Origin: Basidiobolus meristosporus CBS 931.73
Taxonomy: Eukaryota > Fungi > Basidiobolomycota
Direction: 5' to 3'
Assembly: GCA_002104905.1 (NCBI GenBank)
Contig: MCFE01000096.1
Span: 1 to 64,000 of the forward strand
Length of the DNA: 64,000 nucleotides
The notes under the pieces were generated by a model that saw only the letters and a list, made by a program, of their open reading frames with translations, was not told the DNA's origin and searched no databases. The translations under genes were made by a program, and so were the position numbers. Below, one piece after another: positions 911-41,616 of the stretch; positions within the stretch are counted from its first letter, which is position 1; each line of letters begins with the position of its first letter.

Positions 911-956
911 CTTCCGTTCTTTTAGTAAGAGATAGATTCCTTTTGTTTAATACTAC

Positions 957-974: not shown

Positions 975-978
975 ATTC

Positions 979-1306: not shown

Positions 1307-1317
1307 CTCCCAACTGT

Positions 1318-1944: not shown

Positions 1945-1949
1945 AATTT

Positions 1950-2023: not shown

Positions 2024-2348
2024 TTATTTTTTATCCAGGCTGGCAGTCTTCATACTCCTACAAGAAAACGGTAGCAATTACATGCATCGCAAAGGGTGCA
2101 CTGCATCCACCTTCCCCCTAATCAATGTTATAGTCAGTTCGCACACCTACCTTATTTTGATGTTCTACAGGCGCATCTGATTTCGAATTTATGCTTTGCT
2201 GGTATTGTGCACTACCCATATTTTTTAACAGAATGAGTTGGCTACCTTGAACTCACAGTGTGGAGATGGGAATGATATGTAAGTCTGAACAATAACAGAA
2301 GACTGCGTTGTATCTAAAATCAAATTCTACAACAAGTATAATGTATCA

Positions 2349-2420
2349 TCTCAGATAGTATAGTGGTAAGTATCCCCGCCTGTCACGCGGGAGACCCGGG
2401 TTCAATTCCCGGTCTGAGAG
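2349..2420 (+). tRNA. trnD: tRNA-Asp(GTC)
   Basis: Anticodon arm cccgc-CTGTCAC-gcggg; T-run downstream. Confidence 0.96.
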
Positions 2421-2656
2421 TTTTGTTTTAGCTGTCTTGGGTACATCAAAATTATACTTTGACTGTTCTTGAGTTCGTGTACTCAACGGTACGCACTAAA
2501 TATGACATGACGCTAAGATAAAAAAAACTCTTACAAAATGGGCCGTAGCTTGTATCTATACAGGTCGTTATTTTTATAGAACTACTAGTGTGGTTGATCG
2601 ATATGGATGTAAAGAGCTACTTTGATTAAACAAGTACTGGTTTTTCTAGCAACAAC

Positions 2657-2729
2657 GGGCGTATGGCCAAATGGATAAGGCGCCTGACTACGGATCAGGA
2701 GATTCCAGGTTCGATCCCTGGTATGCTCG
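2657..2729 (+). tRNA. trnR: tRNA-Arg(ACG)
   Basis: Anticodon arm cctga-CTACGGA-tcagg. Confidence 0.95.
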
Positions 2730-2943
2730 AAGTTATCTTTTGTCATCAGCGTGTACAGATAAATGCTAAGCATGTTTACCTCTTCCTAAGCGATTCAATA
2801 AATCCTATGGATTGATGATTTTTCTGCCCGAGAATAGTACGTAGTACAAACATATTCTTCCATATATTGTCCGATTCATTTTCTACAACTTTACTCGCTC
2901 AGCAATGTAATCATAATCTAAGCCTCGGTCTTACAGACGTAAA

Positions 2944-3014
2944 GCATACTTGGTTTAGTGGTATAATTACCGCCTGCCACGCGGTAGACCGGGGTTCGAT
3001 TCCCCGAGTATGCA
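2944..3014 (+). tRNA. trnG: tRNA-Gly(GCC)
   Basis: GCATACT/AGTATGC acceptor stem; anticodon arm accgc-CTGCCAC-gcggt. Confidence 0.96.
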
Positions 3015-3576
3015 TTTTATACTTTTCCACTATGGTACCTTTTTGCATAACTGTATTCCTCAAATGGTTCGTTTTCCGGAACTTAATAGCTTACCAATAT
3101 GCATGTCTACTATACATTATGTTGGGTCACTACACTATTGGAAAAATGGAAAGATGGTAAAATGGTTAGGGTTAATGAAGACATACAAATCGATATTTTC
3201 AGAGCCGCTGCAAATCCTATAGTCCATCGCTAAAACATTTTAGCATAACCGCTTTGAAACTTTGTGATCTACCGATAATCCTCCACTGATTAGCTACGAG
3301 TCGAACCTACAGCATGATTGCTTGACACAGGCGCACTTCCAGAGCTACCGTAGATGCCTGTAGTATTAATTCGTTGAAATAGAAATCAAATATTGTGCGG
3401 TTAGCAGTTAGTTGGGCCCTATGTCACCGCTCTATCATTCTTGTATAAAATATAATGTGAAAGATCCTTCCAAGCTGCCATCTCATTCACAAATTCAAGT
3501 AGTTAGCCGAATCACATATTAAATGTATAAGGTATCTTGCAATATAGCACGTGTTTTCCATTCATCAAACAGTAAT

Positions 3577-3649
3577 GCCTCCTTGGCTCAGTTGGCAGAG
3601 CGTCTGCCTAGTAAGCAGAAGGTCGCTGGTTCGATTCCGGCAGAAGGCA
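3577..3649 (+). tRNA. trnT: tRNA-Thr(AGT)
   Basis: Anticodon arm tctgc-CTAGTAA-gcaga. Confidence 0.95.
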
Positions 3650-3782
3650 TTGAAATTTTTGGTCTCTATTATTTTTTACTGAGTTTAAGTGGAATTCATG
3701 AATTGTACAATTGTGATGCATGGCGGGTTGAAAAATCATTTAGACAAGTCGCAAATTGACTGTTACAAGAAACAAAAAGCAA

Positions 3783-3865
3783 TGAAGAGAGTGGGATTCG
3801 AACCCACGCCTCCGAAGAGATCACGGCCTTAACGTGACGCCTTAGACCAACTCGGCCATCTCTCC
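3783..3865 (-). tRNA. trnL: tRNA-Leu(AAG)
   Basis: Reverse complement gives GGAGAGATGGCCGAG...; anticodon arm tcacg-TTAAGGC-cgtga; long variable arm. Confidence 0.95.
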
Positions 3866-4182
3866 ATTTACGAAGGGACCTGTGCAAGGCCTATGTAGTA
3901 TGTAATGGTCATAGTCACATTCATTTGATTTGTGCGTGCGCTAGAGTATTATCAAAATAGAGGTTGCAATTCGATAGCTGTATATGTGCTCTGAGTATTT
4001 CTTTCTTACGCCAAAGTACAACAGTTGGAGGATTTGTTTGAGTTTACGGTCAGATATTATCGCGATTCAGTCTACAAAATAAATGGGCAAACAAGGTATT
4101 TAGGAAACGAAGGTTGGTGATTCAAGGAATTCAGATAGAACATAGGATACACTAATCATAACTTTCCTATCGGTTTATCCAT

Positions 4183-4267
4183 CCGAACATAGCTCAGTTG
4201 GTAGAGCGGAAGACTGTAGTGTTACATAGCAATCTTTAGGTCCCTGGTTCAAATCCGGGTGTTCGGA
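4183..4267 (+). tRNA. trnY: tRNA-Tyr(GTA) with a 12-nt intron (4220-4231)
   Basis: Anticodon arm gaaga-CTGTAG[tgttacatagca]A-tcttt; the intron is at the canonical 37/38 position. Confidence 0.93.
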
Positions 4268-4441
4268 CTCTTTTGTATTTTATTCAAAAATTGTATACCC
4301 TTGTGGTGAAGTTATCAAATGACCAAGCACTAGTGGTATTGCCCTCATCGAGAGAGTATGCACACATCATACAGGTCGTTAAGAGTATATTTTGCTACCC
4401 TGGAGGTTTTAAAAGATTGCATACAAAAAATATCAAAAGAG

Positions 4442-4515
4442 CGCTCCTGGGTGGGCTTGAACCACCAACCTCCTGATTAACAGTCAGACGCGCTAGCCAA
4501 TTGCGCCACAAGAGC
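4442..4515 (-). tRNA. trnN: tRNA-Asn(GTT)
   Basis: Reverse complement gives GCTCTTGTGGCGCAATTGG...; anticodon arm tctga-CTGTTAA-tcagg. Confidence 0.95.
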
Positions 4516-4739
4516 AACTTGAATACAAGTGAAGGATGTATCATCTTATGGTTATAGAATACACAAGTATAGCAAGGCATATGGAATTCATTTCTTGCCG
4601 CATAATACTTGCAAGCTGTAAGTCTTGTTTCAGTTATGATTGATCGATTGATTGTTCCCCGACAACCAAGGGTACTTCCTAATTTTTTACATTGGCGGCA
4701 TCCGTTGACATATACGGCAAGCTGCCCTTGTAACAAGTA

Positions 4740-4812
4740 GCCGTCTTAGCTCAGTTGGGAGAGCGTCAGACTGAAGTTCTGAAGGTCCTGCGTTCGATCC
4801 GCAGAGACGGCA
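4740..4812 (+). tRNA. trnF: tRNA-Phe(GAA)
   Basis: GCCGTCT/AGACGGC acceptor stem; anticodon arm tcaga-CTGAAGT-tctga; no intron. Confidence 0.95.
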
Positions 4813-4996
4813 TTTTTGATTCAGTTTCAATGTTTACTTCTTTACCGTTACCTAAATGATCTACCCAATTACAGATCAAAGTGGTGTAAGCCTCGGGTCT
4901 GTTCTCATACTTTTTTTTTTGAAAACTTCTGTTACCTTGCTTTTTCTCTGACCAATTTATATTATATTGCCACAACTGGAACCTGGTGTGTAACAT

Positions 4997-5069
4997 GCCC
5001 GGCTAGCTCAATCGGTAGAGCGTGAGACTCTTAATCTCAAGGTTGTGGGTTCGACCCCCACGTTGGGTG
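4997..5069 (+). tRNA. trnK: tRNA-Lys(CTT)
   Basis: GCCCGGCTAGCTCAATCGG...; anticodon arm tgaga-CTCTTAA-tctca. Confidence 0.96.
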
Positions 5070-5232
5070 ACTCCTTTTTTCTTCAATTATTTTGAGTCCC
5101 TTTCAATAGTGTGCAAATTCGGTATAGTATTGCATTGCTTTTCCCGAAAAAATCTGCTATCACTTGAATTAGGCCAAGGTAATTGGAATCTCCTCTGCTT
5201 GGAGGGTGTTTATGTACAGCAAAATGATACCT

Positions 5233-5305
5233 TGGAGGACCTGGGTATCGATCCCAGTGCCTCTCGCATGCTAAGCGAGCGCTCTACCATCTGAGCTAGA
5301 CCCCC
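5233..5305 (-). tRNA. trnA: tRNA-Ala(AGC)
   Basis: Anticodon arm ctcgc-TTAGCAT-gcgag; G3:U70 alanine identity pair present; one U:U mismatch in the acceptor stem. Confidence 0.93.
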
Positions 5306-5632
5306 ATTTGTACTGCAAGTTAAAGAACGTATATTGAATATTGCATTAGCATTCCATCTTGCTTATGTCTTGCACTAAGCTCATATGCAGGACAAAAGTT
5401 TTGCGAATTTCTGACTGCCCCACTGTTGTTTTCTCTCAATACCAGCTTGTTAGATGTTGAGAGATATAATTTGCATATTTGGGTCACAGGCGCAGTATGA
5501 GGTCTCCACAAATAGATCAGGTAGCTGAAGGATCCAGCCGTTGCGATATAGAGATACCTTTAGGAATGGAAGAGCGTACTTGTATAAATTTACACATTTA
5601 CAGCAGTAACCTCGGTAGTAACTCCCAACTGT

Positions 5633-5704
5633 GGCTCAATGGTTTAGTGGTATAATTCTCCCTTAGGGTGGGAGAGGTCCCGGGTTCAATTCCCGGTTGA
5701 GCCC
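5633..5704 (+). tRNA. trnP: tRNA-Pro(AGG), copy 2
   Basis: Identical to 1318-1389. Confidence 0.96.
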
Positions 5705-5955
5705 CTCTTTTGCATTTCCATTCAAAATTTTTGATGGCAAGTACGTGTACCAACTCTATTATGTATAGTAGTTCGAACCATATTTTTATGTGGAAGTACT
5801 TTGGATGTAAATTTGTAATGGCATATTTACATGTCATCTACTGTGAGGATTTTGGTTTGCATCAATTTCAGGCAAAGGATTCGTTTACTATCTAGAGAAT
5901 CACCTTGCCATGTGGGTGTACATATTAGAAAACATTTCCTTCTATTCACATAAAT

Positions 5956-6027
5956 GGTTTCGTGGTGTAATGGTTAGCACCCAGGACTTTGAATCCTGTA
6001 ATCCGAGTTCGATTCTCGGCGAGACCT
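5956..6027 (+). tRNA. trnQ: tRNA-Gln(TTG), copy 2
   Basis: Identical to 1641-1712. Confidence 0.95.
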
Positions 6028-6177
6028 CTTTTATGCACATTGCATTCTCCAGATACTTTTGCATTTCAACTCTCACAAATAACAGCGCCTTCATTTTACA
6101 ACGTAGACCGTGTCAGGATTATTCGAATTCTAGCTGGTTTGGACTTGTGTTGGATAGTGGCACCCACCTTCGATAAG

Positions 6178-6259
6178 GACGATATGGCCGAGTGGTTAAG
6201 GCGTATGACTAGAAATCATATGGGCTCTGCCCGCGCAGGTTCAAATCCTGCTGTCGTCG
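6178..6259 (+). tRNA. trnS: tRNA-Ser(AGA), copy 2
   Basis: Identical to 1863-1944. Confidence 0.96.
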
Positions 6260-6264
6260 AATTT

Positions 6265-6338
6265 GCTCGCATAGCTCAGTTGGTTAGAGCGTGGTGCTAA
6301 TAACGCCAAGGTCGCAGGTTCGACCCCTGCTGTGAGCA
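6265..6338 (+). tRNA. trnI: tRNA-Ile(AAT), copy 2
   Basis: Identical to 1950-2023. Confidence 0.96.
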
Positions 6339-6650
6339 TTATTTTTTATCCAGGCTGGCAGTCTTCATACTCCTACAAGAAAACGGTAGCAATTACATGC
6401 ATCGCAAAGGGTGCACTGCATCCACCTTCCCCCTAATCAATGTTATAGTCAGTTCGCACACCTACCTTATTTTGATGTTCTACAGGCGCATCTGATTTCG
6501 AATTTATGCTTTGCTGGTATTGTGCACTACCCATATTTTTTAACAGAATGAGTTGGCTACCTTGAACTCACAGTGTGGAGATGGGAATGATATGTAAGTC
6601 TGAACAATAACAGAAGACTGCGTTGTATCTAAAATCAAATTCTACAACAA

Positions 6651-9560
6651 CTGCCAGGTCCTTCACCAATACTGTGACTGAGTGCTTCTCAGGTTGAACT
6701 GCATTTTTTCCTAGTGAATGCTACACTTGTAACTCAGTATCTGCCTGCTTGTCCCTTACCAGTACTCTGCAGGCTACCTGACATTTCTTTGTCACTTGTT
6801 TAGAGCTTTCAGCCCTGCTTGTGATGGGCCCTTGAGGATGCTGCTGGTTTTGAGCTGCAGCACCCATATGCTTCTGCCTTTGATAGTCTTTGTTAATGTT
6901 GATATACTTACCTAGAACACCTATGTAGGCCCAAAATCTGTTGCTTGTTTGAATTCAGGATAATGCATATGGAGCAGATCAAGTGCCTTCTGCCTGGCTT
7001 TGAGCTCTTGATTGACTCATGATATGCCAGCCTTGAGGAGATGGCATGCTAGATTCCCTATGAAAAAAACTTAGAAAAGGCCAGCAAAATACCATTAGGA
7101 TATCAGCTGAATTCCAAGTTCTCATAATTGACAACTCTCAATATATCTGTTGTTAGCTGATGGGCAGGCAAGCAAACTAATTCTCCAGGAGGAGGCTATG
7201 CCAACCAGCATCTGTACCAAATTTGGTAATTAGCTGCCCATTACTTCCATCAAAAATTTCATTGAAACTCTGAATCAAAAACATCAGCTGAATACCTGCA
7301 AAATACCATTGATATACCAGCAGCATATCAGCTGAAAATCAGATGAATTCCAAATTTGCAATTTTTTATAGGAGCTCTCTCACAGCCTCTTGATTATTAG
7401 CTCACTCTTCTCAATGGCTTTCCATATCTTGAATGTTAGTCTACTCTTCATTGTTGCACTGAATGGCTTCATGGATCCTCAATGTATTTTGGCTTTTAGG
7501 CTTTAGTATATATATCATAGTCTCACCCTCCCATGCAATGATAGGTTTTTCTATGGGCCTTATCTTTGAGCATTGTTGTTGTGCTTCAAAGACTTTACTG
7601 TGTTCCTCTGCTGTTACATTGGGAAATGGCTCAATTTCTGGATTGGACATTTAGCTACTAGCATGCCTTCTTTGCAGCCTAAGTACCATGTTCTCTACCT
7701 GTGATATTGATTGCTCTACACATATCATCTACTCATCCTGTTTTGGGACTACTTCCTGATTTCTCTGGGCTATTGCATCTATCCTAGTAGTCACTGCACC
7801 TTATTGGTGCATGAATACTTTGATATGAACTGCCAACATACTTGCTAATAATGGTGGTGGGGATCTTATGACAGTTATTTGCTGGTCTTCCACCTGAGAT
7901 ACCGCATTTGCTACATTCTCATCTGCCTGAGCATTATGGTCTCCTTGTATTGCCATAGAGATTCTCAATTGTCTACTTGACTGTGAGACTAAGGAGCTCT
8001 CAATATTACCCACAGTGAGCACACTGTCATTATGGCCTTTTTTGGATGCAGCCCTGCTTATTGCACTCAGTGTCAAAGCAAGCTGCTGTCCAACCATTTT
8101 TTTGCAGTTGTTTGCAGGGGGTTTAGCTGGGAACCAGATAAGCTTGCTTTATTTTTGTCAGTATGTATATGGAAGTGAGTCAAGCCAATAGGGAATCAGT
8201 ATTACATATATGTGCATATATGGTGCTATAGCTTTAGTTATGATGCTGATTATGGTGAGTCATTACTGAACCTTACATACCTGTAGGTGTACTATCATAA
8301 GTACAAGACTTTCTTATACTCAAATGAATATTTTCAAAAAGGTAATATAATAGCATTACATTGTTCAGTGTCAAGCTACTTGCCATGTGGACAAGTCTGC
8401 TAAGATTCTACATCATAAGAGAAGGGAAAAAAGTCCATGGGATTATTAAAAAAAGCCTTTCTGCCATAAAGCACATACAATGTCATAAAGCACATAAACA
8501 GTGTAGGAAGTAATACAAGGGTTGTGGCCAGTGTTTTGCCACACAAGTCACATTTGAGCATCCATTAGTCATCACTTTGACAATAATAGCTTGCCAGCCA
8601 CATGGCACTTCTATGAAGGTACCTAGCTGCACTTGTCACCTTGCTCAAACCAAGTCTAGTGAGCTTGTGGCACCTTCTGGCTCACCTCTGCCTTTGAAAT
8701 ATGGTCTGCACAGTGATAACTCTGAAATGAAGGCTCACTGATGGATTGAAAGCCTATCTCCCAGCATAACAGTGCACTGGATGGGACATGCAAATCCCAA
8801 TATGTGACAGGACTACACCTATAGAAAAAATGCCAAAGATACTTTATTGAGCCAAGTGAGCCCAGTTATCCATTTATTGGAAAGCAATGCTTCCAGTATT
8901 ATCACTTATGAGGACTTTGAGGAGTTACTGCTACTTCTTGCCAAAATCATTCCAGGATGCAACTTACTATGTACATGGTACAAATGGACAACCATCATGT
9001 AGCTGGCAACATATGACCCAGAGACTTTGCTAATACCAGTGTAATTTAAAAATTGCATGATATTTACATCAGAAAATGTCACAATTACAAGGTATCCTAC
9101 TTGTCAGGGCTCCACCACCACAGGAGGAAAACATTGTTAGGTACCATACTTTTGTTCAATGAATCTGCAAGTGAATAGAGTGTAAATTCTCTAGTTGTCT
9201 ACACCACACCTGATGCTCCTCAGACTATTGCAACAGCAGTGGGTAAGCAAACAAGTGGGGGAGAATCTATAGGGAACATATGAATGGCACAAGGGGTGGT
9301 AGAAATGGGAAAAACAGTCTAGTAAGTTTGAATAGTACCAGTATACAGGACTAACTATAGGCTGCTGTACAGCTATTATAATGCCAAGAGATGTTTGAAT
9401 TAAGGTCATCAAAAATGGTGTCAAGTTCTCTTCCATATTGGCAGTTGCATATATTGGCCAGTAGGTTCAGCTCAACTATGTGTAGACCACATAAACACTG
9501 TTGGATTGCCATACTTAAGGACTATAGAGCACTGTCAATTTATTACCCTAATGGGCAGTA
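6651..9560. mobile_element. Decayed CACTA/EnSpm-like DNA transposon, copy A (transposase remnant on +, second ORF remnant on -); ends approximate
   Basis: Reverse-complement similarity to 18800-19900 and 56700-58300 (for example caagtgacaaagaaatgtcagg). Cys-rich transposase N-terminal remnant at ~8850-9200. CpG almost absent. Confidence 0.6.
7056..7373. mobile_element. MITE-like insertion with CCCTAT.AAAAAA terminal inverted repeats
   Basis: Interrupts a segment that is contiguous in copies B and C (GAGGCTGT...TCTAGCA). Ends are ccctatgaaaaaaa and ttttttatagga. Contains repeated ATCAGCTGAA-like motifs. Confidence 0.55.
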
Positions 9561-9637
9561 AAACAGCAAAACACCATCACAATATTGTCATAAGAATGGG
9601 AACAAGGCCAATAACTATAAGCAGCCAGCATACTGAC

Positions 9638-9985
9638 TGTTGCAAGAGCCTTGGAGATATTGGAAGTGATTGGGAGAACAAGTAGATTATGTGGTTTTCA
9701 CTTAATGATTTATTGAATGTAAAAGTAGTATTTATACTTTAACATGATCTTGGCATTACAAGCATGTAGAATAGGTTAAGGAAGGTCCCAAGAACATGTG
9801 TGCAAAGTTTGAGGCTGTTGGAAAAACCTTGAGATTTTCATATTCTGGGTACCTGGTATTTTGGTGAATTTATTCTAGGTAAATCCCAACAAGGAATTTG
9901 ATTAGTATTCTCTAGGATTTGAAGGTAATGATCTAAGTGACTAAGTTAGGTGAATATTTAGGTGGAAATACAAATCTTTACAACA
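9638..9985 (-). mobile_element. Solo LTR of the copia family
   Basis: TG...CA, 348 bp, reverse-complement homologous to LTR 46603-46951; flanked by ctgac/atgac (5-bp TSD with one mismatch). Confidence 0.85.
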
Positions 9986-11400
9986 ATGACAGTCTCATTG
10001 TGAGATCTCAACAGCCAATCCAGATTAGATTCACCTGCAAGACCAAATTATTCTTTATAACAACCAGGAAAGACACTCTATTGTTATCTTCCTTATTGAC
10101 CTTAGTAAGCTGTTTCTTTGACAGTGAGTTCCCCTTATTGGCCAATTGTGTTGGTAGGCAAGCATGTGGCCTCAAGGTGACCCAGCTATTGCCTTCCTTG
10201 ATTGTAACCTTCTGTGTCTCCAATCTATTGGGAGCTTACCCAGTTTCCTAACTCTGCCTTGAGATTGTATCAAGGTTAGCCATTGGTATCACTACAGGGG
10301 TTATGGTACTGGCATATGCACCTAGCATTAGCCCAATTGGCTTAGTTCTGTGGCTTGCTTGTTCAGGATTTTGCACTGCAAAGCAGATTATGTAAGGTTG
10401 CAATGTAATTTCAGGGGCTGTTACTGTTTAACTAACACCTTGGATATGTCTATGCCAACTGCTTCACTATCCAAGAGAACATTGGCTGATGTGTTACTGA
10501 CAGTTCCTTCCAATACTAAAAGCTCTGGATGGTTCAGTGGGCTTAGAGCATCAGCCACATTCATTATTTGCATATTACAATTGCTTTTTTGGATAGATTG
10601 AGTTGTACTCCTTATTTGTAGTTGCATAGGACAGTCCTGAAGTAGCTGACCATGTTTCTAGCAATAAGATAGAGACCTTTGCTCATGCATTGTACTTCAG
10701 ATATTGTGCCCTGTTTGTGTAACACTATCATGTCTAGGACCATAGGGTTTAGGTTAGATATGCAGAGCAGTATAGCATTAGTTGGCTTCTCTGCCACCAC
10801 TCTGGAGCTTCTATGAGTGGTTTGATACAGTGGAGTGTAATGTCAATCAAAGTGAATATAGTCATATGGCTCAACCTTGGCCATGATCTTGGGCAAGATA
10901 GATAATGGTATGTGGTGTATAGGAACATGAGAATTATTGATGCAACACTTCTTAAATTCTTTGTATGAGGTGTGCTCACTGGGCACAATAACCTTTAGCA
11001 AAAGCTTGCTAGGAATACTTGGGTTTTGCCTCCACTCTACTGCCAAGGGAATTAAGTCACAAGCTTGTCAAAGAAATGCTATTGAGCCACAATCCCCAAC
11101 TTAGCTGGCATCATAGCAAAAGTATGTGCAGGACTTAGCATCTTGCAGGTTGAGAATATATTACAGCTTTCAAAGTCAAAATAGCTGTAAATTCCACCAG
11201 CACTGAGTTAATAAGAATGCTGCTTTGGTTAATAGTTATAAAGACATGAAAGTGTCTCTGTCTGTTCAGGCTCAACTATAAGTGAAATACAATATAATAA
11301 CAGATACTTATTTTGAGTGTTCCTCTTTAGTAGTGCCCCCAAGCTCAATTGGCTGTTAGAATGGCTTCCTAGGAATGAACCATGGTCTGGGACTAAAGGT
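9986..11400 (-). pseudogene. Decayed Ty3/gypsy gag-protease remnant; extent approximate
   Basis: ORF fragment LLVLEGTVSNTSANVLLDSEAVGIDISK resembles a retropepsin (LLDSGA motif), with a degenerate knuckle-like segment upstream; heavily mutated. Confidence 0.45.
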
Positions 11401-13059
11401 CAGATAGGAGCAGGTAGTAGTGACTTCACTACTCAGCTAACTGGAATATTAAAAAAAGGATGATGACTTGTAGTAAAGGAGTGTCTCCCTTAAATACTTC
11501 TTGGATTGGCTAAGTGATAACTAATTTTGGTGTTCCAGAAGGTTCTGGAAATCATGAGAAGCCTTGATGACATTATAACAAGCACAAATCTTTTTAAGCA
11601 GGTTTCAGAATGTTCTAAAAGGCACACCACATTCCACCATGCAGGGATCAGTATTCTGGAACCTGTAGAGCAAAGAGAGAATGTTTATGGAATTAAATGG
11701 TCAGGATGGTGGCATAGTATGTGTACTTGCCTGCTATAGATGGCTCCATTTGTTGTAACCATACATAAGGTGGGGGATAGCTTGAGCAATGGAATAAGCA
11801 GAAGCAAGAGTTAGCTAGCTTGTAGGCCAATGCTGATCAATTAAAGTAAATGGGATACTACTGAGCTTAAGGTAGTTGAAGAATAACAAAGTCAAATATA
11901 TGGAAATGAGCTTATTTATCAGTGGGTGGCACTATGACCCCTCTATAACAGTACTCAACTTCTGAGTGTGGCTGGTAATATAGGCCTGGATGCAATGTTC
12001 CATCTGGTTGGAGTCAGATATACTGAGGATTATGAGCATCAGTGTGTAGAATTGTTGGTTATAGTCCCAGACAGACCTTTTCTATTCCAACTATATAACT
12101 TATATCTTGCATTTCACACTATATTGACTAGGATAAACTGTGTTTGGAGTGCTGACACAAAGTTATCCCAAATTTCTATGCCTGAGAACAAGTTCCATGC
12201 TGTAACCTACATAAAAAGCTTCCATTAGGGAGTAGCTTCCTTTTGAAAAAAGGTGGCTGCAAGGCTAATCTTGACCATGTCAGGATATGCCAAGAATATA
12301 AAGTGTATTTCTTGACCCTGGTCCAGGCTTAGAATGTTCTAACAGAAATAATTTGGTCTTGCAGGTGGATCCAGTCCAGATTAGCCATCAGGATCACATT
12401 GTGAGGCCATTGCTTTCCAGCAGCTTGGAATATATGATCCTCTTCAAAATCATATGGCAGGATTATGGTAGTGACTTTCTGGTTTTACTGACAGCTACAG
12501 TAACAAACTTGGCAGTACTTTGACCATGTTTCACAGGGCTTGTCTGGCATTCATATGGTCTTAATGCGGTCTCCTTTTGCTTGAGCAGGTGTAACAAGCC
12601 TATTCATGGCTTCTCAGTGTAATATTTGCAAAGTTGCAATATGTCTTTTACTATTAATAACATCTATATCATGTAAATATATGCTTGATTGTAGTCACTT
12701 TGGCCACAAATACATCTTGAGTATCCTCAAAAGACTTTTTAGTACCTAACCAATATATTTCTTTTCCCTGCTGAGTTCAAGTGCCCCTTATAGATGCACT
12801 CAGGTACTTGCTTGTGTGAATTTTATGTTGAAAGGTGTAGAAGTTACTTGTGACCAGGAGAAACCTGTCATACCTTGGTAAAGTAGTCCTAATGGCAATC
12901 AGGTGCTTGTTTAGTCCAACCCAACCTCCCCTTACTTACCTGATTACCTATGCATTGGGGCTGCTTAGCTTCTTATGGCTAAAGGCATAGGTTTCTTAGT
13001 GTGCATACTGGTGCTTAGTATTGTCCAACTCATCTGATCTGTCTACAACATGACAAACT

Positions 13060-16000
13060 TGTTGTAAGAATCCTGGAGATATTGGAGGTGATTGGGAGAA
13101 CAAGTGGATTATGTGGTTTCACTTAATGATTTATTGAATGTAAAAGTGTATGTATACATTTACATGGTCTTGGAATAACAAACACATAAAATAGGCTAAG
13201 GAAGGGCCCAACAACATGTGTGCAAAGCTCAGAGCTGTTTGGACAGCTTTGAGAATTTTCATGTTCTGGGTACCTGGTATTCTGGTGATATTATTCTAAT
13301 TAAGTCCCAACAAGGAACTTGGTCAGTATTCTCTAGGACTTGGAGGTAATGATCTAGTGACTAAGTTAGGTGAATATTTTGGTGGAATTACAAATTTTTA
13401 CTACGCTCCTACTCAGCTAAATGCTCATACTGACTAGTCCTAATTTTGACTCAAGATATTCAAACTTGTCTCTAGCTAATGGTTTGGTAAATATGTCTGC
13501 AATCATTTCATCTGGATAACAGTAAGTCAAGCTAACTAAGTTATTCTCTATAGTTTCACATATCAAATGATGTCTAATATCTAAATGCTTAGTTCTAGCA
13601 TGAAAAGTTTGACTTCTACCTATTTGTATGCATCCTTGATTATCTTGAAATAAAGTGATAGGCATTTTTTGACTTAGGCCTAGGTCTGTAAAAAGCTTTC
13701 TTGACCAAATTGCTTCTCTTGTAGCTTCACAGGCTGCCATATACTCTGCCTCTGTGGTGGAAAGTGCTACAGTTGGTTGCTATCTTGAATTCCATGAAAT
13801 TGCCCCTTTACGGTAAAGAATGGTGTATCCTGTGGTGGATCTTCTGTCTTCCAAGTTTTGTCCCCAATCAGCATCAAAGTATCCCACAATATCCTGTTGT
13901 GAGCTCTTATGTGTCTTAAGCAGATATCAGCAGTTCCTTTCAGATATTTAAAAATCTGCTTAAGTGCTGCAATATTATCAGATCTATAGTTCTGATTATG
14001 TTGGCTGACAACTCCCACTGAATATGAGATATCTGGACATGTTCCAAGCATGATACTCATCAGACTGCCAAACATAGATTGATAAGGAAAGTCAGGGCTT
14101 TCAGATGGCACTGAGATCTCTTGATTTGGTTGAGTTTTGACTAAGTTAAGGTTTGCCTCCATTGAGGTAGCTGCTGGTTTACAGTCTTCCATTAGATACT
14201 TCTTGAGTATATCTTGAATATACTTGGATTGGCTTAGGTTGATAGTCTGGGTACTTCTGTCTATGGAGAACTTAATCTATAAGTAGTAACTGAGTTCTCC
14301 TAGATTGGACATCTTGAACTGTTTAGATAGGCTGGATTTAGTCTCTTCCAATGTTGCTAGGTTATTGGTGTCTATAATAAGATCATCCACATATAGAGCT
14401 AATAGAGCAGGATTAGCTCTATCTGGCTTATTGTATATACTATAGTAAGCATTACTCCTTTTGAAACTCAAAGATTCCAAATAAGAATCTATCTTACAAT
14501 TCCAGGCTCCTGGTGATTGCTTGAGTCTATATAGACATTTTTTAAGCTTGCATACCAAATGGGGGCTATCTTGGTCAATAAACCCATGAGGCTGGTCCAT
14601 ACATGCATCCTCATCAAGCTATCCATCCAAAAATGCAGTTTCTACATCCATTTGATGTATAAAAATCTTATATTTGTCTTCAATAGTTGATATCAATCTG
14701 ATGAAATTAAACTTGGCTACCAGAGCAAAGGTCTTTGTATGGTCAATTCCTTTTGTTTGAGAGTATCCTTTGGCCACAAGTCTTGATTTGTATCTTTCAA
14801 TTGTACCATCAGCCTTCTATTTTGTCTGAAAGACCCATTTGCATCCAATTGACTTTTGGTTGATAGGTAATATGACTAAGTCCCAAGTTTGGTTGTCCAT
14901 CAGGGCCTGATACTCCTCAGTCATTGCAGATCTCCAAAACTTTGTCAGAGAGCTATTTAGGGCCTCTTTACAACCTGTGGCTCAATGATATGGACTGAAT
15001 AGGAATAGGCTAAGTTTGTACCCTCATTGATATAGTAATTTGGGCTATTTCTTGTCAGGTTGGATCTCCAGGCATTGGGTATTGGAATGATCACTTCTGG
15101 GATATTCCTGGGCACTGATTCAGGCTGAACCACAGTTGTAGAGTCCTCTGGAGTGAAAAAGATTTCATTGTTTTGCTCTAATTCAATGCTGACCAATGGT
15201 GGACTTGAGATCAAATTTTGTCATCATCTGATATCATTTTGTGAGTTTGAATTTTGATCAAACAACACATCCCTGGACTTGATCAGCTTCTTTGCTTTGA
15301 TACTGAAGAGTCTGTATGCTTTACTCTCATTGCAGAAGCCCAAAAATATGCATTTTTCACTTTTTGGCTCAAATTTTGACTTATTTCCAGGCCACTTCTT
15401 GGCATATGCTGTACACCCAAATATTTGTAGATGTTCTGCACTTGGTCTGTATCCATACCATGCTTCATATGGAGTGGAATCACAAAGTATTCTGCTATAA
15501 CTCCTATTCTTATAGTGTACAGCTGTGACAACTGGTTCTGCCCAAAAATCATAGGCTAATTTTTGATCATTGATCATAGATCTGGCCATATCATTTATTG
15601 AGCTGTTTTCATGTTCTGCTACTTCATTTTGCTGTGGGGAGTATGGTACAGTAGTTTCTTGCTTTATCCCATGAACTTTGTAGAAGTGGATAATGAGTTT
15701 GAAGGTATATTCTCCACCATTGCCAGAGCATATTTTCTTGACTTTTTCACCTGTTTCTCTCTGCACCATGGCTTTGAGGTCCCTGAACTTAGACAGAGCT
15801 TCTTCCTTTCTCTCCATGAAGGTAGACTCACAAGTATCTTGTATAATCATCAATAAAAGTGAATAAATACTTCATCATGCTTAAGGATAAATTTAGAACA
15901 GGTCCACAGAGATCTGAGTGAACTAGATCTAATTTTTCTTAGTTTTGGTTAACCTAGTGCTCTTGAGCAGGTTTCTGGCTTGTTTCCCATATATGCAGGC

Positions 16001-17732
16001 TTTACAATGCTCCAAATCAGCTGGGGGATCAATTTTTACTCCAGGAAATTAGCTGATCTTTGATTATTTTGCACATATAATCAAAATTGATATGTTCAAA
16101 TCTCTTGTGCCAAAGCATTGGTGTTTCTTCATTTAAGTTACTTATTTAGCTTCCAAATATGATGGAATATATGTTAACTTATACAGATTCTGATCTCTGA
16201 TACCCAAAGCAATATGGGCACCATTTTGATCAGGGATCCTGCATCCAGAATTGCCAAAGCTGAAACTGAGTCCTTCTGCTGTGGCCTTGCTTACAGATAG
16301 TAGGTTTTGGCTATTTCTGGTACATAGAGCACTTCTTTAAAGTCTAGTGTATGGCGTCCTTCACTGCTTCTAAGGTTTACTTGGATAGTTCCTTCTCCCA
16401 CTGCATCAAGTGTTCTATTGTCACCCATGAAAACCTTCTCAATAGGAATTTTCTGATATTGGGTAAAAAGTTCTTTTTGGTGTGTAAAGTGTTGAGATGC
16501 TGCATAGCTAATATACCACATCTGAGAACTCTTGTTTGTGGTCATATCTGGTACAGATATGAATAGTCTATATTCAGTTGTTGCAGCATCTCCATATTCA
16601 GACTTTTTCTGCTGACTATCTCTCTTTTTCAAGCACCAGTCTGATGTATGTCCTTTCCTTTTGCAGTAGTTACAAAACAGGTAGTTGTTGCCTTTGAAAG
16701 ATCTGGGGTATTATCCTTTGTGGTTATCATTGCTTATTCAATCATTTTCTTCTTCCTTCTTATTGGCACTAGATTTTCTTAATACTTTATCCAGGAGCCT
16801 TCCATACACATAGTTTAAGGTCAAATCTTCAGTTTTGGACTCCAAAGCAGATACAAGGCCCTGAAACCTGTCTGTCAGGCTATTCAGGATGATTACTATC
16901 ACATCCTCATCAGTAGTTGGTACACCCACATATTGCATCCTATCCACCAGCAGGGTAATTCTGTTAATTAGATTTTTCATTTCTTCTCCAGACAGCAACT
17001 TTGTAGCAAAAGAGTTTGCATCAAGGATACATTTTCTTAGCAGCTGAACATGACTGGTAGGTGTCTTCTAATACCTTCCAGGCATTCTTTGCTGCTTTTG
17101 CTCTTGATGCATTGAATTAGCAATTTGTCTTTAACATTATGGCAAATGCAGTTAAAGACACTTTGTTCTTTCCTCCAGTACTTTGAGGCTTCCTCTCCCA
17201 CACTTTTACAAGGGCATTCTTCTCCCATGACAATATCCTAAAGGCCTCTTTCTTGTAGCAGCATCCTCATCATCACCTTCCACACTTGGTAGTTAGATCC
17301 ATCCAACTTTTCAGCAGAGGGAAAAATTCCAGTAATAGCAATAGTAGACATTGCAGGGAGTGACAGTTTGGGGCTCATAACCTGTTGTAAGAGTCTTGGA
17401 GGTATTGGAAGTGAATGGGAGAACAAGTAGATTATGTGGTTTTCACTTAATCATTTATTTGAATGTAAAAGTAGTATTTATACTTTTACATGGTCTTGGC
17501 ATTACAAACACATAGAATAGGCTAAGGAAGGTCTCAAGAACATGTGTGCAAAATTTGGGGCTGCTTGAACAACTTAGAATATTTTCACCAGAATACCAGG
17601 TACCTGGAACATGAAAATTCTCAAAGTAAATCCCAACAAGGAATTTGGTCAGTATTCTCTAGGATTTGAAGGTAATGATCTAAGTGACTAGGCTAGGTGA
17701 ATATTCAGGTGGAATCACAAACTTCTACAGCA
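13060..17732 (-). mobile_element. Decayed full-length Ty1/copia element (3' LTR 13060-13405, 5' LTR 17383-17732)
   Basis: Fragmented gag, PR, IN (GGEY...YSPQQNEVAE), RT (YVDDL) and RNase H (ADIFTKPL) ORFs; PBS GGTTATGAGCCC; many stops and frameshifts. Confidence 0.93.
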
Positions 17733-19900
17733 AAGTTACCATGTCAATGATGGACTTGAAGGTAGTATTGTTGATGCAACTGGGATATGGCAGTACTTGC
17801 AATTTAACTTGTCTTCCTATCTGCCTATACATCCACTCCACAGTATTCTCCCAAAAGCTGAAGCAAGGTCCAAACTTCTCCACATACTAAGCAAGATGGA
17901 GTAGAGAATACTTACAGTAGTGGCAGAGATTTACATGCTCAGCTTTGTGCTTGTAGTTGTGCTGCTCAAATCCCATCACAAGCTCCTTGTACAAAAGCTA
18001 TAGATATGCTGAGGTAGTATTGGTGATCCACTTCTGGATAAATACTCCTGCAATATCAAAATATGACCCCTGATGCTTCCAATATACTCATGACAGAAGT
18101 TGCTCTAGAAGTCCACTGGAATAAATGCAAATCCCAATGATCCATTCCTTCATTGTATTGCTGCATATGTGTATGAATAGTAATTGGAGTTTGTGGGAAG
18201 TGCATTGGGTGGTACAAGCTTAGTAACATGTTGCAAATTCTTTCAAATCTCTCTGGTATCTGAAAGGGCTCATATAGCCTGAAGTTCCTCAAGTACAACT
18301 TGGTCATCAGTACTGGGATACTGTTTCATAGCAAATGCATTGCTCCCAGTGGAAAGCTTTTGCTCCAACAGATTCCCCTATCTTAAATGTCACTGGTTTT
18401 TGATCAGATCCATATTCTAGTCAGTTGCTTATAGCATGCCAGCCTTGCTGCAATTGCATGCTAACTTCTGTAAGTTTTCACTGTAGATAGATGATGCTGT
18501 TGGTGCTGGTGTCAGGACAATAATGCATATGAGTTATAGAGTAAATCCCCTGAATCTTGCACAATCAACAGCAACACTACTCATTGTGCCCAGAAAAGCA
18601 AGCTATGTTGGTGAGAGGTGGGGTGTCTTTAATGCAGTTAATAAATATGCTTTGACAAGACTGCCAATTACTAATATACAGCTGGACAGCATATGGAACT
18701 CATCCAGCAATAGATGCAGGTTTCTATCCAGGTTGAACAGTGATTTAGGCCCCAATATGAGTGAGACAACCATCAGATTTTAGCTCTGATACCATAAGAT
18801 TGGTGAGAGATTCAGATTAGCAAATACTGAGTGCAGTTCTTTATAGCTGCAGAAAATTTGTTGGACTGCATGAGTTTCTTGAGACAGTGCATTATTGGAA
18901 TAAATCCAGAGTGTGAACAGTGTTTTCCTCCCATGGTGGTGGATTCCTGACAAGTTGAGCACCTTGCAATGGTGGCATTTTCTGATGTGAGTGCCATGCA
19001 ACTGCTAATACATGGTGGTATCAGAACAGTCTCTGAGTCACATGTTGCCAGCTGCATGACAGTTGTCCATTTGTACCAAGTACATGGTAAGTGGTATCCT
19101 GGATTAATTTTGGCAGGAACTAGCAGTGCATCCTCACAGCACCAATTGCTAATATTGGTAGAAACATGCAACTTCTCTGGCCACTGCATTACCTCATACA
19201 CCTGTATTTGGCATTTCTTTCACAGGTGTTGTCTCATTGCATTTGGAAGTCTTGCCAGTCTCATGTAAGGTACTGTTGCTGTGAGATAGGATGAGTAGAT
19301 GATGCATATAGAGCCATCAATATCCCAGGTAGAGAATGTAGTATCCTTGCTGTAACAAAGGAACTCAAGTAGCTCAATGTCACAGACCAGAATTAAGCTA
19401 TTTCCCAATGCAACAGCAGAGGAACACTGTAAAGTCTTTGAAGCACAACAGTGCTATAAAGCCCACAAAAGCCTATCATTGCATGGGAGGGAGAGACTTT
19501 GATATATATAGTAAAGCCTAAAAGCCCAAATACATTGAGGATCCATGAAGTCATTGAGTGCAACAATGACAAGTGGGCTAACAATCAAGAGGCTGTACGC
19601 AGTCTAGCATACCATCATCTGAAGGCTGGCATACCATGGGACCATCAGGAACTCAAGGCCAAGCAGAAAGCACTTGATCTGCTCCATGAGCATTATCATG
19701 GATTCAAACAAGCAAACAGATTTTGGGCCAGCATTGGTATGCTAAGAAAATACCTTAAGAATAGTAGAGCTATCAAAGGCAGAAGAACAAGGGTGCAACA
19801 GCTAAAATATTGGTACCCAGCATGTAGACCTTTGAAGTGGGCCTATAATGTAGTGTTTTCCAAGGCTAAAAGATGCTTCAGATGAATAGATAGAGTATGT
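17733..19900. mobile_element. Decayed CACTA-like transposon, copy B; ends approximate
   Basis: Minus-strand remnant ...IPPCISSCMALTSENATIARCSTC...; plus-strand ORF 19499-19885 (AVRSLAYHHLKAGIPWDHQELKAKQKALDLL...) shared with copies A and C. Confidence 0.6.
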
Positions 19901-20632
19901 GACTGCACTAGAAAGTTACCAATCACTTGGATTGTAAGAAATTCAAACAAATATTAGGCAGAATTGCCAGGATTCTAACAGGCTTATGTAGAAGCCACAC
20001 CATATAGCTAATTAGTAGAATGTAGATTGTCAACTGGATCATTATTTCATTGATGAATTTTTTGATCTAGTGAAGCCCTCATCGAACTTATCTGAGAAAT
20101 GTGATACCCAACAACAATCAGGAACGAGAATGAGGATGGTGAACAGTATGATTAGTTCACACGCTAGCAATCAGAACGTGTCTACTGCAACCTTAGAAAA
20201 AGACAAGCGATACAGTCAACCAAGCGAGGGCATAGGTGCTGACATACGCTAGACATGGCGCGTATGGAAAAGTCGGTATTCAACGGACATATCGGAAATT
20301 TAGCAGCGAGCATTCTAGGGGCATTGATGCGTCGTCTCCTTTTACTCCGGTTACTGTTGCGGGGTGACTGATAATATTGTCTGATGCGGGGTAGAGTGGC
20401 ACAAGCATATACGCCTGATTGAGAGAAATCCACGATCTTACAGTTGTCAAACAGATCTCAGGCTGGTGCTCCTCGATCTTACTCGATAAAGATAGATGGC
20501 CATGCAGCAACGCAGGAATCCCACGAGTATAAATACCGGAGAAGCGCTCCTCCCGACAACAACAATAGCTTCAGTGTGCCACCTATTCTATTCTTATTTA
20601 TATTAGAACGTTTCTTCATAGACCCCTAGATT

Positions 20633-37411: not shown

Positions 37412-40400
37412 CTAGAGCGATACGGTGACGAGCACGTCCGGCTCGAACGTCCGTAGCAGCCGGAGCATCGCGAGGTACCGGCGCTCGAACTCGCGCACCA
37501 TGCCGTCGAGCTCCCGCCAAGGAAGATGCGGCTTCCCCTTCATCGCGCGGATCGCCTGCCACAGGGACTCCACCGCGTACTGGGTCTCGTTGAGCTCCTG
37601 GATTCTCGCCGGGCTGATCTTGTGGACTGGAACGGAGTGATAAGGAGTTGGCTCGGGTGGATTAGGTTGGGTTGAGGGGGGGGGGTGCGCACGCTTACCT
37701 GCGGGTCGTTTCTCCAGGGGGAAGGCTCGGATCCTCTCCAGCAGCGCCCCCTCCACTTCCATCCCGATCGCTCGGTCTTCCGAACGAAGGGTCAGGTTGA
37801 AGGTGCTCTCTTGGGTCCCTTCGACCAACACGTCAATCTCCATTTGGGATCTGACCTACTAACCGGTCACTTACCTCGGGTGAGCGTCAGCGTGAGCAGG
37901 TGGGGGCTATACGGAGTGTGGAATACAGCGGTGCTTGCGTCCACCAGGATCTTCTCCAGCCTAGGTCTGGGGAGCCGGTCAGTTCGTCGAAGGTGTCCGA
38001 AGAGGGAGCGGGTCGCCGTCACCCCCAACCCATCACTTACCTATCTACATGTTCGCCCAGGAGGATGGAAAGTAAGGACTTGTGGAGATCGAGGTCTTGG
38101 TGGGACTCGGCCCACTTGACCTTCAACCGGATCTCATGGCTCTTCACCCTCTCGTGGCCGCCCGAGGGCTGCCGCTGTAACGGGAGTGGTCGGTTATTCA
38201 AGGTGGGGGGGAGTTGGGGTTCACGTGATGACTCTCTTACCCATCGCTTCTCTCCGGAGCGGTCTAGCAGCTCCGCGACGTGCCTGGTGAGTCCCGAGGC
38301 TCGATCGAAGTTGTTGAAGTACGGGCTTGTTTGTGTGTATGGCGAAGGGTAGGGGATCTCCTGGGGACTCGGCGCGGCGAAATCGATCACATCAAATGTC
38401 GCCGTCTGCAACAGGATGTACACTGTTGTCATGATCGGGGGTCAGTAAGGCCTGGACGAGTGACGGGATCAACGGGAAGGGGTAGATACCTGAGTTGCGC
38501 GCATGCCTGAGCGAGTCGCTAGAGTAGCTGGACGAGCGTAACCCGACCTCCACTCGAAGGGGGAATATCTCGTATCGCATGGGAACCGGGATCCACTTTT
38601 CCCTAGGAAGGTTACGTTAATGGACTGAGGAGGAGCAGGCGCCCCGCTTCACTCGCAGCCAACCAACCTACCATGTTCCTGCGGTCAGACTCGCCTCGTG
38701 CACGATCTGGTTCGACGTCTGTGGGGGGTATTTGTGCGGGTTCAGGCTGAACTGGACGTTCACTGGGGTGGGTTAAGGATCACTCTCAATCAGCCAACGC
38801 ATCGACGTCTGGGTTACATCCAAAGGATACATTTCCAACCGGAGCGTACGGTGGTCTCATTCACCGTCAAGGTGACCCGCAGGTAGGGCAAGTCACGTAG
38901 ACTGCCGGATCGATGGGTGGGGACGACGGTGGGGGTGAGTTGTAGATCCATCTCCGGCCTCTTCTGCTTGATTCTCTCCAACTCGTAGAGTAGATGGTTG
39001 TTCATCTGGATGGCGCAGGTTGTTTCCTAGGCGAGGGAGTGAGCGTGGATGCGAGGATCGATCCCCTTGGTTCGATTCATACCTTCATGCGCTTCTCTAG
39101 CTTCGTCTTCTCCGAGGAGTGGCTCGCGATCAACTGCAACGTATCCTTGATCTGCATCCGCAGTTGATCAGGGTCGTAGGTGGCCGGTTTCCCGCTGGTG
39201 AATGGTGAGAAGAGGCGGTACCCGTGGCCTAGAACCAAAAGTTCCTCACGTACCTGTCCATGTACCACCGGTATCCGAGCAGCTTGTTGCGAGATGACAC
39301 CGCCACGAGGTGGGTTTCTTCGTCGGGATGGACGAAGGCGAATGCCGAGAGGATAGGAAGACTCGGCCGAGTGACGTTCAACAAAGTCGGGAGCAACTCT
39401 ACCAGAATCCGTGAGTGACCTGACAAATCGGCTGGTTTGGCAGGGATCGAGACTCACCCTTGGGGCTCGTATTCTTCCACATGTCCACAACGAGTAGCTG
39501 TCCTTGGCCAACTGTCAGCGCGAACGTCTCCTACACCGTGACGCGAGCATTAGCTACCGTGCATCCTAACCTCCCCACCGCTTCCCCGATAGATTACCTT
39601 CAGTTCGGCCGACGAAAGTACCGGGCCTGTTACGAAATAGGTGCTGGAAAGATGTCGATTCGAGACGGACTCCATGGTGAGCACACGCAGGGCGCCGCGT
39701 TTCCTGTGGATTCGCCGTTTAGTCTCCCCAAAGTCGCTGCTCTGGTATCGCCCCGAGGTACATTACCCTACAACCACCAGACAGTCTTCAACCCCTGCCC
39801 CTCGTGGGCTACGGACCACCATAAGCCCGACGATCGGTTCCTATATATAGAAGATTCTTGGTCAGCTTCGGTTGATCCCGTGGAATTCTCTCGACGGACT
39901 CGCCTCAAGGGTGCATAGGAGCAGACGGGAGGATTCGGCGTCCCAGTCCTGGTAGTAGACTTTTCCTTCGCTGGTGCCGATTAGCAGGATCGGGCGACCA
40001 TTCAGAGCCCTGGGAGACATGGGTTAGCCATCGTCGCGAGGATCCCATTAGCACCGTTCGTCACCCACCGATCCACCCCAAACAGGCCGGAGAACGTCTT
40101 GACGCTGAGATGGTTCTGCAGGTTCGCGTCCGTGGCTGGGAGAAGTGCACCGCGCGGGGGGATGGGGGTTAAAGAAATAACGTGGTTTGCTATACATATA
40201 CACATATACACGATGGGCCGGTTCCCCGACGAAATCAAAGGATATCCACTCGACTGCACGTCACCTTCTCCCCATCCAGCGGAAGGGTGCCCAGGTGTCG
40301 CTTGAACTCCTCCGACCCCAAGCCGAGCCTGCTACCCTCTACGGTGAACCAGGTTCCCTGGGGTCCGAGGAAGCCCCACTCCGGGCCGTGTTCCCCCTCG

Positions 40401-41132
40401 ATACGTAGGATGTTGCTCACCGGGGTCTGGTCATGGGTTGTCTTGTCGTTAGGAACGGGGTGAAGTCCACAGGAGGGTAGGGGGTTCTACCTCGTTGTAA
40501 AGAAGATGCTCCTCCTCGCGTATCAGCAGAAAAGTACTGGGGAGAGCCTCCCCCGTCATGTTGGCTTTCTTTCGTTTGGTTGGAGGCGACGAGTGCTCCG
40601 AAGACGCGGTGCTCCTACATTGAGACCCGACCCGACCCGGTTAGTCCCACTTGGAGGGTACGAAGGGGAGGTATGGTTGGTGGCTGAACCCGCTTACCGT
40701 AGTTTCAAGGGGACTCGCCAGATTCTCCCATCCAAGGTGCTAACCAGACAGAATCTCCGGGTGCCCAGGGGATCCTCCGAAGGGGCGTCCGGCCTCGCGT
40801 CCTCCTCGAAGAGGAAGAGGCTTCGCACCCGACCAGGAAACCGCCAGATCTCCTAACCAACCCACCGACAAACCGAAACGGGTCTCGTGAGTCCAGGTCG
40901 TCCGAGAGAGAGAGAGAGAGAGGGGGGGAGGGCGTCGTCGACTTCACCTTACCTGAATTTGAAATCCCCCCACCACGTGGACCAGCTTGTCCAACACCCG
41001 TATACACCGAACGCTCCCCGTCCTCGAGCTCGCCAGCTCCACCCTGCCCCCCAGTTGTGGTAGACCGAGGGAGCCGTAGTTCTCTATTGGTGTGGGTTCC
41101 GACCCACCAACGTTCTTGTCGCTCCTGTTCAT
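37412..41132 (-). CDS. FAAP100: FAAP100-like Fanconi anaemia core complex subunit, about 18 exons
   Basis: The hand-spliced protein contains, in order: LSVKTFSGLFGVDRALNGRPILLIGTSEGKV; LLCTLEEPIVGL...EDCLVVVGKRG; TYFVTGPVLS; LLVVDM; THLVAVSSRNKLL; QIKDTLQLIASHSSEKTKLEKRMK; SGWKLNVQF; FPLRVEVGL; VYILLQTATFDVIDF. This order parallels vertebrate FAAP100 motifs as I recall them and has not been checked by a search. Confidence 0.72.
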
Positions 41133-41616
41133 ACTACCGGCTGTCTAGGTCGCTCTCTGTGCGCGGTGTAGGTATGTGTGCAGGTATGGAGGGAGAGGGG
41201 GGGGGTACAGCTCACCAGCTTAAGGTTTCGGTTCCCGATCAGCCAACAGCAATCCCCGCATCACATGCCAGACTCGTATCTTGTTTACCCCAACCGACCA
41301 ATCGCCTTCCTCGCCTGATCAAAATACTGACTACTTGATCCAGACCAGTAGTCCCCTTTCTCACCGCAGATGCCTAGGTGGCTAGTGAGGAGGCCCAAGT
41401 AGAAGGGGCTTCCCAGGTGGATTTGGGACCTGGCCAGAGTTGGGGTTTAATCCCCATGGCGGTTCACCTTCCCTTGCTGGCCTGTCAAACCAAAATCCAG
41501 GATGCTTTGCCCCACAGTGGAGTTGCCTGTGTTGGGTTGTGAAAGCAATATGTGGATGATGGCAGGTGAGAACACTGGTCACTTGGTTGTATCCCAGGCA
41601 GAAGTCATGCGGTAAG

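Follow-up and report, generated by a model that had tools for sequence, protein, structure and literature searches.

FAAP100 is one of the two large scaffolds of the catalytic module formed by FANCB, FANCL and FAAP100, the ubiquitin ligase of the Fanconi anaemia (FA) core complex. Its architecture has been described as a succession of WD40, coiled-coil, β-sandwich, α/β and helical-bundle domains, and the protein itself as an orphan with recognisable homologues confined to vertebrates (PMC12126235); plants, yeasts, flies and worms are listed as lacking it (PMC4132730). A survey of annotated proteomes that defined a 'minimal FA complex' of early-diverging fungi, and that included Basidiobolus meristosporus CBS 931.73 (Barua et al. 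2024, PMC11061109), states that the fungal kingdom lacks FAAP100. The gene described here lies on the minus strand, at 37412-41132, of a 64,000-nt stretch of this same strain (contig MCFE01000096.1, positions 1 to 64,000; hereafter the window), and probably encodes the Basidiobolus counterpart of FAAP100. That the protein belongs to the broader group of FAAP100/FANCB scaffolds, FANCB and single-scaffold variants included, is highly likely. By profile, language-model features and predicted fold alike, animal FAAP100 is the closest match to its C-terminal 495-575 residues, and the match is collinear, with residues ~290-824 running against human ~305-881 to the C-terminal end. What is new is a divergent fungal member of the known FAAP100 family, not a new family.

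The coding region starts at an ATG (41132-41130), five codons downstream of an in-frame TAG (41147-41145), and ends at a TAG (37414-37412). The list of open reading frames shows only scraps on the minus strand across the gene, the longest of 131-144 amino acids (aa); once spliced, the frame is open throughout, giving 2,475 nt with 824 codons and one terminal stop, a G+C fraction at third codon positions of 0.75, and 19 exons separated by 18 introns of 56-101 nt. The splice model was set by the joints of a 2,237-nt contig from the public run X3, which maps to the gene piecewise, with the introns skipped. Fifteen joints are listed for this contig, with three more beyond the listing: thirteen of the fifteen read CT..AC on the plus strand, corresponding to GT..AG introns on the minus strand, and the remaining two are GC-AG and AT-AC. 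As exon 4 begins at contig position 282 and exons 2 and 3 together make 279 nt, introns 2 and 3 were removed from the same molecule. Intron 1 is not among the listed joints; it is placed by the reading frame, by an exon boundary conserved in B. ranarum, and by an unspliced X3 contig of lower depth that runs across it (33.9 vs 135). At about a quarter of the depth, this spanning contig suggests that intron 1 is partly retained, and such retention would stop the reading frame just past exon 1. The same intron (40853-40952) holds a low-complexity tract, (GA)n and C-rich, especially at 40895-40936, where reads seem to be cut.

No public run is recorded as RNA, and X3 is labelled 'DNA?'. Its organism code differs from that of runs X1 and X2 of the same study, it is >99% identical, and its contigs are spliced or transcript-bounded; within the window, its coverage is confined to 37434-41185. 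X3 thus behaves like a transcriptome, or RNA library, made from this strain or a very close one. In X1 and X2 the gene is present unspliced, on contigs of ~8.5 kb that may be the source assembly; the window differs from them at four single bases (37391, 37523, 37691 and 38007; three A>G and one T>C on the plus strand), and the difference at 37523, in exon 19, is also seen in X3. The gene sits inside a GC-rich gene island at ~20-42 kb with 47-59% G+C, set off sharply in composition from the gene-poor, AT-rich flanks of ~38-41% (1-20000 and 42000-64000).

An exhaustive HMMER search, queried with a 143-aa read-through piece, free of stops, that runs from exon 18 through the in-frame intron 18 into exon 19, returned two credible matches, K493DRAFT_299330 of B. 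meristosporus (495 aa) and K7432_010901 of B. ranarum (575 aa, 46% identity); two further matches were dismissed as unrelated repeat or coiled-coil proteins. Word-based searches with K7432_010901, with a profile of the two species and with region 20-210 found no further relatives. A scan for related loci in a collection of bacterial and archaeal contigs was blank, which says nothing about a fungal gene. At the B. ranarum locus, exons 2-19 are collinear at 727-4145 and exon 1 is recognisable by eye at 525, so that the gene there spans 525-4148. The gene is a real one: it is transcribed and, within Basidiobolus, conserved from end to end. A sequence-only reading of the window had proposed these coordinates and this strand, with about 17 short introns splicing the scraps into one frame; the X3 contig, from the ATG at 41132 to the TAG, bears this out, and the intron count was essentially right. 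The CTAAC/CTGAC branch points that it had assigned to these introns hold in part: taken strictly, the motif stands near the 3' end in 6 of the 18, the others having CTCAC, CTAAT, TTAAC or nothing recognisable. The parts of the gene are listed here from 5' to 3', with the support for each; B. ranarum positions are those of its locus.

37412-41132, minus strand: whole coding region; splice model, X3 contig (extending to 41178, in the 5' untranslated region) and collinearity in B. ranarum
40953-41132, minus strand: exon 1, 60 codons; upstream in-frame stop, X3 cover 40959-41178, donor conserved in B. ranarum
40698-40852, minus strand: exon 2; contig numbering, tblastn match to B. ranarum 727-831 (E 7e-6)
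40491-40614, minus strand: exon 3; contig numbering, weak collinear match in B. ranarum
40246-40426, minus strand: exon 4; X3 piece 40246-40426, B. ranarum 1112-1291 (E 3e-12)
40145-40245, minus strand: intron 4, U12-type AT-AC, 101 nt; unambiguous joint 40144/40246, GT..AT on the plus strand, overlap 0
40069-40144, minus strand: exon 5, holding the LFG motif; X3 joints, B. ranarum 1407-1445
39904-40009, minus strand: exon 6; X3 joints, B. ranarum 1516-1617 (E 4e-12)
39841-39903, minus strand: intron 6, GC-AG, 63 nt; joint 39839/39903 with 3 shared letters, a one-letter shift giving GC..AG
39767-39840, minus strand: exon 7; X3 joints; the part aligned by HMMER to human FAAP100 begins at ~39804
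39598-39703, minus strand: exon 8; X3 joints; K493DRAFT_299330 starts at an internal Met here
39458-39530, minus strand: exon 9; X3 joints, match to K493DRAFT_299330
39254-39398, minus strand: exon 10; joint 39398/39458, 100% identical to K493DRAFT_299330
39083-39194, minus strand: exon 11, where the long coiled-coil helix begins, with the IK..L..I motif; X3 joints, K493DRAFT_299330
38831-39026, minus strand: exon 12, closing the coiled coil and opening the β-sandwich; X3 piece 38831-39025, B. ranarum 2520-2726 (E 3e-22)
38763-38830, minus strand: intron 12, U12-type GT-AG, 68 nt; joint 38762/38831, conserved in B. ranarum
38672-38762, minus strand: exon 13; X3 joints, K493DRAFT_299330
38490-38602, minus strand: exon 14; X3 joints, K493DRAFT_299330
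38241-38422, minus strand: exon 15; X3 piece 38241-38422, K493DRAFT_299330
38041-38174, minus strand: exon 16; X3 piece 38041-38174, K493DRAFT_299330
37875-37966, minus strand: exon 17; X3 joints, K493DRAFT_299330
37699-37818, minus strand: exon 18; joint 37817/37874, K493DRAFT_299330
37412-37626, minus strand: exon 19, C-terminal helical end with the TAG at 37414-37412; X3 piece 37472-37626, 100% identical to the C-terminus of K493DRAFT_299330

At the sequence level, a profile built from K7432_010901 and K493DRAFT_299330 was run with hmmsearch against 177,635 distinct PDB sequences, accepting E up to 10, and has a sole match there: human FAAP100 (7kzp_P, E 0.4, 12 bits). The alignment is collinear over 171 residues, query 26-196 against chain 329-512, and contains, in order, the motifs DCLV..G, GPVL, L.VVD, L.A.S....L and IK..L..I. 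These are five of the eight motifs on which the sequence-only reading had based its proposal of FAAP100, the other three being LFG..., LEEP and GW.L.VQ. PDB searches with other parts of the material show what E values of 0.1-2 look like where there is no signal: a profile of exon 6 met WD-repeat proteins, including WDR63, at E 0.3-1, together with a nanobody, all at chance level, and a profile of exon 4 met only the C-terminus of RecA, again a chance match. K7432_010901 taken alone (phmmer against the PDB) gave chance matches only, to BglII and a light-harvesting protein, and ten exon and read-through pieces plus both proteins gave sub-threshold chance matches in Pfam to RecA_C, Flagellar_rod, SIN1, Misato and LGE1.

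The structural comparisons return the same family. By language-model features in the ESM Atlas, clusters of the FANCAA family come first for both Basidiobolus proteins, at 0.93 for K7432_010901 (219/256 features) and 0.91 for K493DRAFT_299330. In the structure search of the Atlas, whose models of the two proteins have predicted local distance difference test (pLDDT) values of 0.63 and 0.59, the top three places are held by FAAP100 clusters, with template modelling (TM) scores by query of 0.56/0.50/0.49 and 0.47/0.52/0.46 and matches spanning 303-439 residues; the next family, BBS2/BBS7/Rav1-like, reaches TM <=0.33. AlphaFold models of K7432_010901, made from two sequences and no templates for the entire 575 aa and for the C-terminal 364 (residues 212-575), were compared with the PDB by Foldseek. 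For the 575-aa model, 7kzp_P and 7kzp_Q come first (E 1.2e-6 and 1.8e-6), with 9a0j_P at 2.7e-5; after these FAAP100 chains follow BBSome chains, from 1.6e-4, and 7kzq_O at 1.4e-2. The C-terminal model, which has no overlap with the part aligned by HMMER, also places 7kzp_Q and 7kzp_P first (6e-5 and 7e-5), other chains of the FA core coming next. VIA-align, which works without Foldseek, ranks 7kzp_P first of 48,161 PDB representatives (Z 9.8, root-mean-square deviation, rmsd, 11.7 Å, 164 residues aligned), placing C-terminal model 2-346 on chain 500-874. It is the only top match to extend across all C-terminal sub-domains, the other rows with Z >=8 being single β-sandwich domains; a further comparison by the same program with 7kzp_Q gave Z 9.9, with model 6-354 on 505-881.

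The order of secondary structure along K7432_010901, as assigned by DSSP on the models, is one of β strands at 1-145, a helix of ~50 residues at 157-209, an eight-strand β region, an α/β region and a terminal helical hairpin. This is the published order of FAAP100 (PMC12126235), with which the C-terminal architecture is collinear, and it agrees with the layout of coiled coil, β-sandwich-like region and α/β C-terminus that the sequence-only reading had drawn. The anchor points of the sequence and structure alignments also agree with one another: residue 196 of K7432_010901 falls at about residue 487 of FAAP100 (chain index 512), assuming that an N-terminal tag accounts for the 25 additional residues of the 906-residue chain; residue 217 falls at residue 505, and the two proteins end at the same point. 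Set beside human FAAP100 (7KZP chains P and Q), the Basidiobolus protein is alike in length (824 vs 881), in a domain order that is collinear to the very C-terminus, and in short motifs near the coiled coil and the last predicted propeller blades; it is unlike it in being 8-15% identical in alignments and in having no Pfam FANCAA match, and its gene is unlike the human one in its fungal host and its 18 introns, two of them U12-type.

Several results weigh against this identification. The profile match, at E 0.4, is insignificant alone, and unrelated searches with short profiles gave chance matches at the same level; this single match carries weight because FAAP100 was the family named beforehand. 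Neither the exon pieces nor the two Basidiobolus proteins match the Pfam models of FANCAA (PF15146) or FANCB at E up to 10; the missing FANCAA match lowers the claim to FAAP100, and would still be compatible with remote homology. Atlas feature scores of >=0.9 arise in 4-10% of shuffled proteins. Confidence in the AlphaFold models is low (mean pLDDT 35 for the 575-aa model, 46 for the C-terminal one), and their TM scores to PDB chains are 0.17-0.25 at an rmsd of ~12 Å, the tool itself warning on such models; the fold evidence thus consists in rank, span and collinearity, not in a tight superposition. The databases searched hold only two Basidiobolus relatives, with no chain of intermediates to animal FAAP100, and a FANCB partner is not known from the B. 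meristosporus genome, where no search was aimed at FANCB. Each of the supporting searches is modest when taken alone; with FAAP100 first in the profile, Atlas, Foldseek and VIA-align searches alike, the proposal of a FAAP100 in this fungus is supported.

FANCB shares with FAAP100 the same complex and the same overall succession of propeller, coiled coil and C-terminal domains, and some of the same results bear on whether the protein is an orthologue of FANCB instead. Atlas feature clusters with FANCB_N, FANCB_middle and FANCB_C stand at 0.84-0.90, the top Atlas cluster is auto-named 'group B protein', and, with the C-terminal model, 7kzq_O, 7kzp_O and 7kzp_B lie close behind FAAP100 (E 3e-4 to 2e-3); we presume these chains to be FANCB, judging only by chain letter and architecture. 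Yet these presumed FANCB chains rank below FAAP100 throughout, most clearly for the 575-aa model (1.2e-6 for FAAP100 vs 1.4e-2 for 7kzq_O). The profile matches FAAP100 only, the top three of the Atlas structure search are all FAAP100 clusters, Pfam returns no FANCB match, and the 'group B' cluster itself carries FANCAA, the Pfam family of FAAP100. An orthologue of FANCB is thus very unlikely.

The mixture of FAAP100 and FANCB families among the feature matches also fits a single, undifferentiated scaffold of the FAAP100/FANCB type, forming a homodimer around FANCL, either as the state before the two split or as a secondary merger. No second relative was seen in B. meristosporus by word-based searches or by HMMER with the 143-aa piece, and FANCB was found in no fungus by the published survey (PMC11061109). 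Human FANCB and FAAP100 are themselves without detectable sequence similarity to each other (PMC12126235), so that the failed search for a paralogue says little; and throughout, the protein lies closer to FAAP100 than to the chains presumed to be FANCB, which makes a single scaffold quite unlikely. Were it true, the origin of the catalytic module would date from the divergence of animals and fungi or earlier, rather than from vertebrates, and Basidiobolus would have preserved or re-created its ancestral form, as it was before the FANCB-FAAP100 heterodimer.

A last alternative is that the protein belongs to another family of propeller, coiled coil and appendage, such as BBS2, BBS7 or BBS9, or is a lineage-specific look-alike in domain order. 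These BBSome subunits (PDB 6VBU, 6VOA) are consistently the next-best structural neighbours after FAAP100, at Foldseek E values of 1.6e-4 to 6e-3, Atlas features of 0.78-0.81 and TM 0.26-0.32; they run through the same succession of propeller, coiled coil, β-sandwich appendage, platform and helical domain, and with all models of low confidence and Pfam silent this reading gains some room. Their scores are, however, clearly lower, FAAP100 leading by a factor of 100 or more in Foldseek E value and by ~0.2 in TM; they give no sequence signal, the only match at that level being FAAP100, and have no Pfam BBS match. The BBS proteins act in ciliary trafficking, and Basidiobolus is not known to have a flagellated stage, so that a BBSome is not expected. 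Membership of such a family is thus highly improbable; the ranking of the neighbours nevertheless hints, at the level of predicted models, that the BBSome core may be related at a deep architectural level to the scaffolds of the FA complex.

If the protein is a FAAP100, its parts can be read by the animal complex. The N-terminal 300 residues would form a WD40-like propeller, which together with the long helix would engage a second scaffold, be it FANCB or another molecule of the same protein, and the C-terminal domains would hold FANCL. Such an assembly would present UBE2T-FANCL to FANCD2-FANCI, for the addition of one ubiquitin at stalled forks as in animals; from this analogy, we infer a role in crosslink repair. 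Several of the other components are on record for this organism: the supplementary trees of PMC11061109 contain B. meristosporus sequences assigned as FANCL (ORY06328.1), FANCE (ORX96829.1), FANCA (ORY08175.1) and FANCD2 (ORX90317.1); FANCI and UBE2T of the strain were not found in the parts consulted. The absence of FANCL or FANCD2 from the genome had been named by the sequence-only reading as an outcome that would speak against it, and both are present in these trees.

That the gene has been overlooked is explained by its introns. Introns were taken as U12-type when they had a 5' splice site matching RTATCCTT and, close to the 3' end, a branch site like TCCTTAAC, and when transcripts showed them spliced out; introns 4 and 12 show all three, both being removed in the X3 contig. 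Intron 4 has the 5' splice site ATATCCTT, ends in AC and carries a branch-like TTCTTTAAC 24 nt before its 3' end; intron 12 has the 5' splice site GTATCCTT, with TCCTTAAC ~10 nt ahead of the CAG. These are the textbook signals of U12-type introns, the substrates of the minor spliceosome, and both recur at the same position, in the same phase and with the same signals in B. ranarum (locus ~1292-1375 and ~2727-2796). Intron 6 (39841-39903) is of the GC-AG type, GCGAGT...TATAG, as confirmed by the transcript contig. B. meristosporus has the highest density of minor introns reported in fungi (0.554%, or 249 introns; PMC10639083); two within one gene are unusual even in this species.

The existing annotations break at these introns. 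K493DRAFT_299330, the 495-aa 'hypothetical protein' of GenBank, is an N-truncated model of the gene: it is without the first 309 codons, starting downstream of introns 4 and 6, and has one intron, intron 12, mis-spliced. Exons 8-19 are 100% identical to it save for 21 residues that it lacks at the junction of exons 12 and 13, a deletion that falls at intron 12. In B. ranarum the gene is annotated in two calls, one of 199 aa and the 575-aa K7432_010901, split at intron 4/5. The gene models are thus broken in both Basidiobolus species because of two U12-type introns and one GC-AG intron, and the gene was therefore missed. The description of the gene as hidden, made from the sequence, is apt insofar as GenBank holds it truncated and unnamed, but overstated in that a 495-aa model does exist. 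The survey of the 'minimal FA complex' included the same strain and yet called FAAP100 absent (PMC11061109); the gene model at this locus is truncated, and the protein very divergent.

Absence calls based on proteomes thus deserve caution in lineages rich in minor introns, and others made for the Basidiobolus lineage may be affected likewise. Atlas clusters place FANCAA in arthropods and FANCB_N in oomycetes, so that the family appears wider than the statements in the literature suggest. If the Basidiobolus gene is indeed a FAAP100, the origin of the dimeric catalytic scaffold would be pushed back at least as far as the last ancestor shared by animals and fungi, and the 'minimal' FA complex of fungi would be less minimal than described; a culturable fungus would then be at hand in which to ask why FANCL needs large scaffolds.

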